From assembly GCA_051530055.1 (NCBI GenBank), contig CM121341.1, forward strand, positions 1,240,001 to 1,304,000: DNA of 64,000 bases. The letters are read 5' to 3'. The first letter of the stretch is position 1. Each line of letters begins with the position of its first letter. Shown here one piece after another: positions 26,292 to 56,630 of the stretch. The notes under the pieces were generated by a model, which searched no databases, had not been told where the DNA came from, and saw only the letters and a program-made list of their open reading frames with translations. The DNA comes from Neoechinorhynchus agilis (Eukaryota; Animalia; Acanthocephala). The translations under genes were made by a program, and so were the position numbers.

Positions 26292-28348
26292 TTATTCCCG
26301 TTTTTTTGATTCTGCACTTTGATCATCACCTCGCTCTTGCGACTCCCTAGCCAATCGAAGACTCGCTTGAATCGTTGCTGTAGATTTGCGGTTTTCCAAA
26401 TAATCCGTTTTAATTGATGACGCTTCGAGGGTAAATGTTGTTTGATGATCAGTAAAATGTTCAGTTTTATCCTCCTCGGCTCGCATAACCCCTATAAAAT
26501 GTGCAACTGGTGCGGCGAAAGATGAACCAGCTAAAGGATTCGTTATGGATCCAGACGCCGTGGTTTGTTCAAGTTGAAAACATCGTTGGCAGTAATATAA
26601 ATTACCGCGACGATACCGGAGTGGTTTTGTGATTTTCTTGCACCGACAACAAAATAGACGTTGGTTTAAGTGCTTGAACCTGGAATCGTTAGGATTCCGA
26701 CGTTCTTGCTTATCTGACTTCGTTACTGCCTTTTCCGTTACAGCGATTGGCGCATTCACAGTTTCGGATTTGTCAATTTGTCGACCGATGCTGCTTGCCG
26801 CACTTTGATTAACCGGGTTTTTAAATTTCATACAAGTCTCGCATTGACACAATCCATCAGAATCATACATCGATGAGCTTTCAGCGATTCCAGGTTCTGG
26901 TACAATTGAAACAAATTCGAATTCCGGATTTCGCGCTGGAGTATCATGCGCTTGTTCGTTTTGAAATGTTTGAACATAATTTGTTTGAACGTTTTCCGAT
27001 GGACGCTTTGATCCAGGAACGATAGTTCCAATGCACGTTTCGCAGAATTTAAATCGCCCGTAGCTGTACCACTGAGTGCTCTCATTCGCGGAACATTTTG
27101 AGCAAGACGATTCATTGCAGCGGCGATGTGGATTATGGGATCCGTGAAGACTGCCAGTCGAAGGAACATGATGTTGCGAACTCTTTATTGCAGGACTTTC
27201 GTTTGAAATTATTTCTTGAACATCACTGAACATCGGTTTCATAGCGTGTGTTGGCGCATGAACAATATTTGGATTTAAAGCATTCGTTTGCGCTGCTCCC
27301 CAAGAAGCACTTGTTTGTCGCCCAGCTGCAACTTGAATGTTTGCCAATTGTGCCATAACTGAGAATGTACACAAATCTATGCATTTTTGGCAAATCCAGA
27401 ATTCCCCGAACTTTTGCCACCTCGAACTTTTGTTTATCTTACACATAACACAGATTTTGTCATCGCGAGAATTCTGTTGCTGTGCGCGATCGGCATTTAC
27501 GGTATTGCTACTGTTTCGGTTTGGTAGATCTGCCGATGAACGTTGATGTTTATTTAAGTCCTGGGTTTGTTTTTCACGCGACCTTACAAAGACCTTTCTG
27601 GCCATTTGAGGTGCACAATTCTTGCACAAAAGGAGATTATAACAGCGATACCAAGAAGAACTTTTCGTTCTATAGCATCTCTGACAGCTAATTTTCTCAT
27701 CGGTTTGCTGTCGATACTTTGAAGAACTATGACAAGCCGATATGTTTTCGGTGTTTGCATTTCGATCGCGATTATCACCATTTCTTTTATTTGAATCGCG
27801 TTATTGTAATTTGTAGCTTCCCTTCGAATCATGTTGTCAAACTGTTTTACAAGCCGGGATTGTTCACTGTATCCTGATGGTTGTTCAATTCTGGGCACAT
27901 TTCGTCCAATTAATCCTTGAGCGTTTTGCGTCGCCGTAGAAGCTGTTCTTTGATTATTGTTTTGAGCATTGTCCGAAGATCGATTCACAAAATCAAATAA
28001 CACTGGAAATGAAGCAGCGATTATTGGAGCGACTGATCTCATGCTGGCAGTAAGCTCGTTCATCAAGTTCGCTTGTGGAGTTGGAACACTGGCAGGAAAA
28101 TGGTTTGTAATTCTCGGTGAATCATTGCGCAGACCAAGAAGATCGGCAAATTCATTTTGATTTGCTGGTTGATTGATTCGACTATCACTTGAATCCCTCG
28201 CTCCCATTTGTAGCCCTGATCTTCCGGTGACACGAGAACTCGCCGGTATGGGAACGTTTGAAGGATCGACTCCGGAGCCTGGATTTTGTAGCAGGTTTTC
28301 CACTCGGTCAAGGAGGCATCGAAGAATGTCATATACTGCGGTATCCAT
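26292..28348 (-). pseudogene. Multi-zinc-finger gene, copy A, frameshifted by a 199-bp deletion
   Basis: ORFs 27584-28348 and 26292-27629 join through an unlisted frame (GDNRDRN..CQRCYRTKSSSWYRCYNLLLCKNC). Four C-X2-C-X16-C-X2-C fingers are present. The deletion junction is at 27797/27798 relative to copy C. Confidence 0.75.
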
Positions 28349-29075
28349 TGGTGAAACTAAATGTTTGGTTTAATGAATGGAATTCGGAAATTTTATAAAA
28401 GTGTCGCGTTCTATCTTGACTAAGACGAATGATCCGGGATTTTTCAGAGCGCATATATATACCTATGGCTTAGAAACAATGATTTGACGAATGAGCTTGT
28501 TTTGTACACATCGCTAATACAGTTTCGTGGGAGCTCCTTGGTTGTGTTTTCCACAATGTTTTCTCCCTTTAGAATATGCAAGTGTTAATCTTTTTGTCTG
28601 TCACGACTTTGTAATCAGCAAATGTTTTGCAAAACAAAAACTAATAATATTGTAAATTAACGGGCGTTAAAGAGCATAAAAAGTTTGAACTTTTGAAGGC
28701 CGGTTATGTTCGTTTAGGAAATTAAAATACTACCTTTTTAACAGCTTGTTTTCTAGCTAACAACCTTCTGTAATGAAAAATATTATTTGCTTTGGACGTT
28801 AGCCTTGTGAAATACTACTTGATTTTCCAGCCGCATTATTCATAAAACAAAATTGTGCTTTTAAAAAGACATGCAAATTTTTTTTGATCGGAACAGTATT
28901 CGAAAATAAAAATTTTAGCGCAATTGTAAATTTCCTTTAGTTGTTTTTTACCATAGGATCACTGCAAAGCGAAAAACCCGATTTTGTACCGTGCTATTCG
29001 GTTTTTTGTATGACAAACTTTTGTGTATTTGACTCTGAATGTCAATGTTACTGAACGATTTTTCTAACTATTTTC

Positions 29076-55900: not shown

Positions 55901-56630
55901 CTGGTAATCGCAATGATTCACCGAGAATTACAAACCAGTTTCCTGCCAGTGTTCCAGCTCCACAAGTGAATGTAATGAACGAGCTTATGGCTAGCATGAG
56001 ATCAGTCGCTCCAATAATCGCTGCTTCCCTTCCAGCGTTATTTGATTTTGTGAATCGATCTTCGGACACTGCTCAAAACAATGATCAAAGAATAGCTTCT
56101 ACGGCGACGCAAAACGCTCAACGATTAATTGGACGAAATGTGCCCAGAATTGAACAACCATCAGGATACAGTGAACAATCCTGGCTTGTAAAAGAGCTTG
56201 ACAACATGATTCGACGGGAAGCTACAAATTACAATAACGCCGGGATCCTTGGACTTGAAATTGTCAATGAGTTTTTACATTCACAACGCGGCTTAGAAAA
56301 CATTCCTTCGCGTTTGCTTAAAAGCAAAACAGGAAAACCTTGTCTTCTTTGTGGCACCAATGAATGTGTTTCCTGGTATTACAAACAAGAAAAAGTCTTG
56401 TGTGCCAAATGTGCAAATTCCCTCTTCAAAACGGCCGAAGATTAAAATAAAAAGATGGTGGTAATCGCGGTCGAAATGCAAACACCGAATACATATCGGC
56501 TTGTCAGAGTTCTCCAAAGTATCGAAAGCAAAGCAACGAGACAATCAGCTGCAAAAGATTCTATGGAACGAAAAGTTCTTGGTATCGCTGTTATAATCTT
56601 CTTTTTGTGCACGAATTGTCCACCTCAAGT
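52939..56630 (+). repeat. Segmental duplicate C (inverted partner of A)
   Basis: Several spurious ORFs translate identically in A and C (30346-30576 with 53590-53820, and 30066-30272 with 53894-54100). Confidence 0.9.
55690..56630 (+). pseudogene. Multi-zinc-finger gene, copy C; 5' 251 codons open, then premature stop, frameshift and truncation
   Basis: It contains the finger CLLC-X16-CAKC. TAA at 56443-56445 corresponds to TCA in copy A, and a degenerate second finger follows. Confidence 0.75.

Follow-up and report, generated by a model that had tools for sequence, protein, structure and literature searches.

What kind of gene lies in damaged form around a satellite array in the genome of the fish-parasitic thorny-headed worm Neoechinorhynchus agilis, and does its position there reflect a partnership between gene and satellite? 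The locus is contained in a 64-kb stretch of the assembly GCA_051530055.1 (CM121341.1:1,240,001-1,304,000; hereafter, the window), which carries three damaged copies of one intronless zinc-finger gene, denoted A, B, and C, the first of which corresponds to the public gene model ACOME3_000218 (protein P0002). The evidence set out below makes it probable that these are three decayed copies of a gene family so far found only in N. agilis and that they came to lie beside the 206-bp satellite through co-duplication.

A six-frame scan of the window recovered nine motifs of the form C-X2-C-X16-C-X2-C, all nine located inside copies A, B, and C, whereas composition-preserving local shuffles gave 0.025 on average and never more than 1; just one other CX2C-X10-24-CX2C motif was found in the 64 kb. 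The nine motifs represent seven distinct fingers, and S-x-x-W is present in five of the seven, placing a tryptophan at finger position 12 (W12), which is found in fingers 1 to 5 and missing from fingers 6 and 7. The seven X16 fingers, five of them with S-x-x-W, that a first-pass annotation of this DNA had described are therefore real and far beyond chance expectation. The fingers are separated by long linkers of 25-135 residues rich in glutamine, asparagine, and serine, and the 16-residue loop is kept in every finger of all 16 family proteins.

Five intact single-exon open reading frames (ORFs) were identified at four loci outside the window, namely, ACOME3_000207, 17 kb before the window (686 aa; locus L001, protein P0001), ACOME3_000604 at 3.016 Mb (867 aa; L002, P0003), ACOME3_000439 at 2.30 Mb (867 aa; L005), and genes 6239 and 6231 (636 and 690 aa; L006 and L007); L004 denotes a C-type copy beyond the window end. 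ACOME3_000604 contains exactly the seven fingers that had been reconstructed from the three broken copies, and, together with ACOME3_000439, it bears out both the ORF of 850-900 aa predicted from that reconstruction and the description of an intronless, multicopy gene with seven evenly spaced C4 fingers. At least 15 gene models belong to the family, and they fall into two subfamilies with 31% identity to each other. Common to both are an N-terminal helix, an 'NYxNAG[IV][IL]G' block, and fingers 1, 2, 5, and 7. Subfamily 1 also carries a degenerate eighth finger (IVPEPG...CQCETC; residues ~664-688 of P0003), in which the first cysteine pair is replaced (PEPG) and the homologue of which is intact in subfamily 2 (residues 379-402 of P0006). 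The genes of subfamily 2, too, are single-exon ORFs and lie among leucine-rich repeat (LRR) genes.

An exhaustive HMMER search of 1.84 billion representative proteins with P0003 returned five matches at E ≤ 0.001, four of them from N. agilis. P0006, which represents seven genes on CM121342.1, is 31% identical to P0003 (E 5.7e-28). The fifth match, the only one outside N. agilis, is the 165-aa protein P0007 (E 8.6e-4 to P0003). Word-index searches of proteins recovered N. agilis sequences only, whether a single sequence or a profile served as query, and the profile thus yielded nothing beyond these matches. P0007 is encoded on a 17.5-kb terminase-bearing, phage-like ENA metagenome contig and has two CX2CX16CX2C fingers ending in C-x-E-C-[FI]-G-S, an ending that also follows family fingers 4 and 5 (with T for the final S in finger 5); the terminase-bearing context is the reason for treating it as borderline and probably convergent and for leaving it aside. 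Neither the N. agilis genome/transcriptome paper nor the rotiferan-parasite paper mentions zinc fingers, GATA, or this family. With no match to a Pfam or NCBI-named family and no convincing relative outside N. agilis, the earlier claim of a new family was upheld, and Pfam, protein, and neighbourhood searches led to neither a described family nor a transposon ORF. So far found only in N. agilis, the family is an orphan whose fingers have a GATA-like fold.

Scanned against Pfam, the whole proteins, the individual fingers, and the finger alignment produced only scattered sub-threshold matches to unrelated C4 families (RING, B-box, FYVE, ArfGap, ClpX, and IS91 Zn). Sequence searches of the PDB, in which the copy B ORF, the finger profile, and individual fingers served as queries, brought no significant match; uS14 was the best (E 0.0017), with GATA3 at E 0.42. 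An AlphaFold2 (AF2) model of a single finger, built from an alignment of 12 fingers, is predicted to form a beta-hairpin followed by a helix (predicted local distance difference test [pLDDT] score of 79.5). The full-length AF2 model has a mean pLDDT of 32.5 and exceeds 50 only in the fingers, suggesting that these are the sole structured islands in the protein. A Foldseek search of the PDB returned no match at E ≤ 0.001, with a weak list of treble clefs comprising the ClpX zinc-binding domain (ZBD), uS14, LIM, and GATA, and an ESM Atlas feature search was uninformative (maximum score 0.77). The exhaustive VIA fold search was headed by GATA1, AreA, and AtGATA18 (Z 4.4-4.0, root-mean-square deviation [rmsd] 2-3 Å over 34-36 residues), with GATA1 (Z 4.4, rmsd 2.1 Å over 35 residues) standing within 1 Z unit of ClpX ZBD, eS29/uS14, and LIM. 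GATA fingers thus rank first at scores tied with those of other treble clefs, and the models point weakly to a treble clef closest to GATA fingers.

Comparison with 3 known finger types delimits this likeness. Canonical GATA fingers (PF00320) share with the family the two CX2C pairs, W12 (in five of the seven fingers), and the predicted beta-hairpin and helix, but have a loop of 17-20 residues rather than 16; furthermore, the family lacks C-x-N-C and TPLWRR and has no basic tail after most fingers. GATA factors contain one or two adjacent fingers, whereas here up to seven are strung on long linkers. The best PF00320 score was 12.5 bits (E 0.12; cut-off 26.8) for finger 4 in the copy B ORF, with no match for P0003, P0001, or single fingers, and GATA membership was rejected on score and loop length, W12 notwithstanding. 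Closer in spacing are the atypical GATA fingers of Caenorhabditis EGL-27, the RERE homologue, which follow CX2CX16CX2C with a tryptophan at position 12 (bioRxiv 10.1101/2022.05.20.492891), that is, exactly the spacing and tryptophan position of the family. However, EGL-27, RERE, and MTA proteins have one such finger accompanied by BAH, ELM2, and SANT domains, none of which was detected by Pfam in P0003 or P0001, and no RERE, EGL-27, or MTA protein was among the HMMER or profile-search matches. A similar S-x-x-W-Y-x-[WY]-G run is presumably present in MTA1. The resemblance to the atypical RERE/MTA finger noticed in the first-pass annotation thus finds a parallel in the literature, and the weak fold matches point the same way.

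The third finger type, that of ArfGAP proteins, has the hallmark CX2CX16CX2CX4R and hence the same cysteine spacing, and finger 4 weakly matched the ArfGap Pfam family (E 0.061; 13.9 bits, cut-off 28.7) and ArfGAP3 in the PDB (E 1.9). However, the catalytic arginine five residues after the last cysteine is absent from all seven family fingers, and the other ~100 residues of the ~130-aa ArfGAP domain are missing. ArfGAP membership was rejected on the lack of this arginine and on a score far below the cut-off. Since both EGL-27-type GATA-like fingers and ArfGAP fingers use X16, the notion that this spacing falls outside those known had to be given up. Collectively, the weak fold and sequence matches suggest that the fingers work like GATA-like treble clefs, yet fail GATA, RERE/MTA, and ArfGAP membership.

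How the window copies relate to the intact genes was established by alignment to the 867-aa ACOME3_000604 coding sequence (CDS; L002:10001-12604), which recovered every lesion reported from the window alone: the frameshifting 199-bp deletion in A, the TCA>TAA change plus frameshift in C, and the 5' deletion in B, now sized at 853 nt. ACOME3_000207 has lost 195, 105, and 255 nt in three in-frame deletions, each of which takes out one whole finger (1, 4, and 6, respectively). Copy A, with 98.6% nucleotide identity to ACOME3_000207 and not a single difference in the first 551 nt, shows the same three deletions, with those of 105 and 255 nt in frame and removing fingers 4 and 6, but the first spans 199 nt, at 27797/27798. 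As 195 of these nucleotides are also missing, in frame, from the intact twin, the loss of only 4 additional bases (CGGG) accounts for the frameshift, which is bridged by an intron in ACOME3_000218. In copy C, TCA>TAA at codon 252 (56443-56445) is followed by a 1-nt deletion; the same stop is found in both sister copies (L001 and L004), and in all three the gene match ends at about reference nt 955 (window ~56633) and gives way to kinase-derived sequence. The kinase-derived segment adjoining C is also present downstream of the full-length gene in L001. In copy B, reference nt 298-1150 are missing at 33914, and the 5' remnant is interrupted by several small frameshifts. The 3' side is 98.1% identical to ACOME3_000604 at the nucleotide level and the 5' side 81-88% identical to L002, indicating that B is a recombinant or conversion product, and the first ~25 residues of its ORF are an out-of-frame translation.

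Raw reads were examined over 29800-35700, so the read-level check of the lesions bears on copy B. The whole-genome sequencing (WGS) run X8 shows lower depth over the private 5' remnant of B, and it contradicts the assembly within this copy: CGG at 34998-35000 is read as ATA in 49 of 51 reads. Nearly all X8 reads differ from the assembly at 31662, 32157, 32618, 33175, 33378, 33387, 34998-35000, and 35231, reflecting either reads from different individuals or consensus errors in the pooled-worm assembly. The fine structure of copy B is accordingly uncertain. Given these disagreements and the origin of the assembly, a hybrid Oxford Nanopore (ONT)/Illumina MaSuRCA build of pooled worms with Hi-C scaffolding (PMC12690905), the small indels are not independently confirmed.

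The intact and the broken copies differ in their mode of evolution. The fingers of the intact genes are constrained: the ratio of nonsynonymous to synonymous substitution rates (dN/dS) between ACOME3_000604 and ACOME3_000207 is 0.61 overall, 0.22 in the fingers, and 0.70 in the linkers, and there are 0 nonsynonymous changes in 168 finger codons between ACOME3_000604 and ACOME3_000439. The two subfamilies have kept their ORFs, cysteines, and spacing despite a saturated dS between them. Conversely, the truncated C-type copies (n = 3) evolve neutrally, with a dN/dS of ~1.7.

The same read set provided information on expression. Of the runs labelled RNA by guess (X2 to X5), X2 and X3 cover 33543-35315 and not the flanks, lack depth over intergenic parts that the DNA runs cover, and, unlike the DNA runs, contain a splice joint of 56-58 nt at 31540/31597; the missing intergenic depth and the splice joint are the reasons for reading them as RNA. 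Their loose ends at 33914, 33966, and 33991 spell the sequence of copies in which finger 3 and the 604-type linker are preserved, and because this is intact-type sequence, intact-type genes appear to be transcribed. Transcription of copy B is inseparable from that of its 98% identical twins in the X2/X3 contigs. The intact expressed copy that had been sought was thus apparently found, in the form of intact ORFs elsewhere and intact-type sequence in X2 and X3. At 31214-31774, between units A and B, an X2/X3 contig skips 56-58 nt (31541-31596/8), and since the skip is not in the DNA runs, a small spliced transcript is likely to arise there; an ORF with CX2C-X13-CX2C lies in this region on the minus strand (31287-31349).

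These data bear on whether at least one window copy is a working gene, be it B through its 478-aa ORF, C through the 251-aa C-type ORF, or A if the 4-nt frameshift is an assembly error. All three copies are called as genes in the public annotation, the junction in A differs from that of its intact twin only by CGGG in an ONT-hybrid assembly of pooled worms, the 251-aa ORF is kept in three copies, and parts of the RNA-like contigs align to B with 0-1 mismatches. However, the C-type copies are neutral, the B ORF begins out of frame behind a frameshifted promoter-side remnant, and the RNA contigs are matched no less well by the 98%-identical intact genes, with loose ends that spell intact-type sequence. 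We therefore consider a working window copy unlikely and regard the three as mostly pseudogenes, the decayed by-products of duplication.

The setting in which they decayed is a cluster of ~120 kb (1.21-1.33 Mb of CM121341.1) made up of nested inverted segmental duplications and holding eight family copies, of which one keeps its ORF from the N-terminus to the tail. Self-alignment of the window resolves three units, A (minus, 26026-31215), B (plus, 32250-35650), and C (plus, 52939-56633), with A and B head to head in an imperfect palindrome. The upstream regions of A and C are 91-100% identical, and all three copies share, at 96-99% identity, a stretch of ~480 nt that spans the ATG (~400 nt upstream and the first 76 nt of the CDS). 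The boundary sequence of the C unit (52909-52938) is the commonest flank in WGS reads. Large inverted duplicates link the window to loci 17 kb before and ~10-25 kb after it: positions 57314-64000 are 97-100% identical, in inverted orientation, to L001 (17074-20192), and positions 56781-58578 are 99.4% identical to L004 (18904-20702). They represent either very recent palindromes or uncollapsed or misjoined assembly. Kinase fragments or gene models travel with the zinc-finger units (window 57026-57430; L001 2502-3347 and 13177-14651).

Multiple intronless copies sharing 2.75 kb of upstream DNA, inverted 82-bp tandem arrays at 23.4 kb and 59.1 kb, and retroelement debris nearby are all features that could be expected if the gene were cargo of a large mobile element and the copies its insertions, as the first-pass annotation had envisaged. 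The boundaries of the copies argue otherwise: homology ends vary by pair (A/C, 31215/52939; A/B, ~26025/35653; B/L002, 36543; A/L001, 25077), and the only inverted repeats found are the gene copies themselves. No transposase, integrase, or reverse transcriptase is present within any unit or within 10 kb at six other loci, and the only reverse-transcriptase sequence in the window lies outside the units, in a retroelement at 10503-13939. The copies are flanked by host genes that change from one locus to the next (kinase, LRR, AAA, EF-hand, and porin), and both subfamilies are arranged in classical tandem clusters. Mobile cargo is thus extremely unlikely.

A second proposal was that the family proteins bind the 206-bp satellite, in a centromeric, heterochromatic, or drive context, and that gene and satellite were amplified together for this reason. 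Copies B and C do flank the 16-kb array, the satellite lies again 3.4 kb upstream of the C-type copy in L004, and fast-evolving multi-finger families (KRAB and ZAD) bind satellites in other animals. However, the 5.7-kb C segment of L004 is a 98% duplicate of that in the window, and its adjacency to the satellite is therefore not an independent case. More importantly, the 206-bp satellite does not occur within 10 kb of any of the intact, constrained genes (207, 604, 439, 6239, and 6231), and the copies adjacent to the satellite are the broken, neutrally evolving ones. Hence, of the original picture of three broken copies around a satellite, the flanking of the array by B and C stands, the family-wide association does not, and a satellite-binding function, left with no positional support, is very unlikely. 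Rfam searches at the gathering threshold detected tRNAs only, with no hammerhead at the satellite end.

Several observations weigh against our preferred account of decayed copies of an orphan family brought next to the satellite by co-duplication. The satellite does recur beside copies in the cluster, namely, in the window, in L004, and as an array reported 1.5 kb beyond the window end, and gene and satellite may therefore be related locally. Every fold match is below Z 5, and there is no significant sequence match to a known family. Constraint appears weak outside the fingers, given an overall dN/dS of ~0.5 among recent paralogues. As for the underlying data, the RNA status of X2 to X5 combines a guess by the tool with our own reading, the lesions in A and C are those of the assembly sequence, with reads covering 29800-35700, and X8 reads disagree with some assembled bases of B.

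Under this account, the family protein consists of the conserved N-terminal helix and 'NYxNAG[IV][IL]G' block followed by four to seven C4 fingers, derived from an ancestor that probably had eight. Each finger is predicted to be a GATA-like treble clef of a beta-hairpin and a helix, with the fixed 16-residue loop and usually W12; the last finger is basic, and the linkers are probably disordered. Nested inverted segmental duplications in the ~120-kb cluster generated the copies; deletions there have removed whole fingers, B is a recombinant, and the truncated copies drift neutrally. Intact genes of 636-867 aa are retained elsewhere, with constrained fingers and matching transcripts in the RNA-like runs. 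We infer that the proteins act in the nucleus, where they bind nucleic acids or chromatin, that they evolve fast through finger gain and loss, and that the satellite reached its position through co-duplication in a repeat-rich cluster rather than through a family-wide partnership.

By analogy, the family is reminiscent of the KRAB zinc-finger genes of vertebrates and the ZAD zinc-finger genes of insects, which are also clustered and rapidly duplicating, with a conserved N-terminal module, variable finger number, finger gain and loss, and many pseudogene copies. Unlike these, which have C2H2 fingers in tight tandem, it has C4 treble-clef fingers on 25-135-residue linkers, and no target or repressor domain is known for it. 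It is conceivable, if rather unlikely, that the family is the acanthocephalan counterpart of KRAB and ZAD genes, a fast-evolving set of modular DNA binders made of GATA-like C4 fingers. Finger turnover would then adjust which satellites or mobile elements these proteins recognise, possibly among them the 206-bp repeat that is amplified within the family's own gene cluster.

Many conserved regulators have been lost from acanthocephalans (PMC12256650), and their gains, to which a species-restricted, expressed family belongs, are poorly known. Up to seven GATA-like C4 fingers on disordered linkers would be an unusual architecture for this fold, and a family that changes by deleting or adding whole fingers could represent a new class of modular nucleic-acid binders. 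It also marks very recent genome turnover, with palindromes, gene conversion, and satellite co-amplification. The informative members are the intact genes at 1.22, 2.30, and 3.02 Mb and the subfamily on CM121342.1, rather than the window copies.

Table 1. Zinc-finger gene copies, satellite array, and adjoining kinase-derived sequence, in window coordinates.
Feature	Start	End	Strand	Remarks
Copy A, gene body	26243	28348	-	ACOME3_000218/P0002; four fingers (without 1, 4, and 6); frameshift at 27797/27798
Copy A unit, upstream region common to C	28349	31215	-	Includes 150-nt poly-G at 29076-29225
Copy B, upstream region and frameshifted N-terminal remnant	32250	33914	+	Ends at 853-nt deletion/recombination junction
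Copy B, 478-aa ORF (P0016)	33915	35351	+	Fingers 4, 5, and 6, degenerate finger, finger 7
206-bp satellite array (16 kb), between copies B and C	36747	52751		
Copy C unit, upstream region	52939	55689	+	
Copy C, N-terminal region and finger 1 in 251-aa ORF (P0004), then frameshifted finger-2 remnant	55690	56633	+	
Kinase-derived fragment joined to truncated end of copy C	56627	57430	+	PK_Tyr_Ser-Thr, E 5.8e-6

The perfect 150-nt poly-G run upstream of copy A is absent at the equivalent place in C, B, and L001 and is therefore probably an assembly artefact. The 82-bp tandem arrays, located in inverted orientation at 23406-24457 and 59120-59650, bracket the whole zinc-finger and satellite region. 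Elsewhere in the window (10504-14841 and 15171-16541), three tRNA genes lie beside a reverse-transcriptase ORF, and an intact tubulin gene is found upstream of the zinc-finger cluster.

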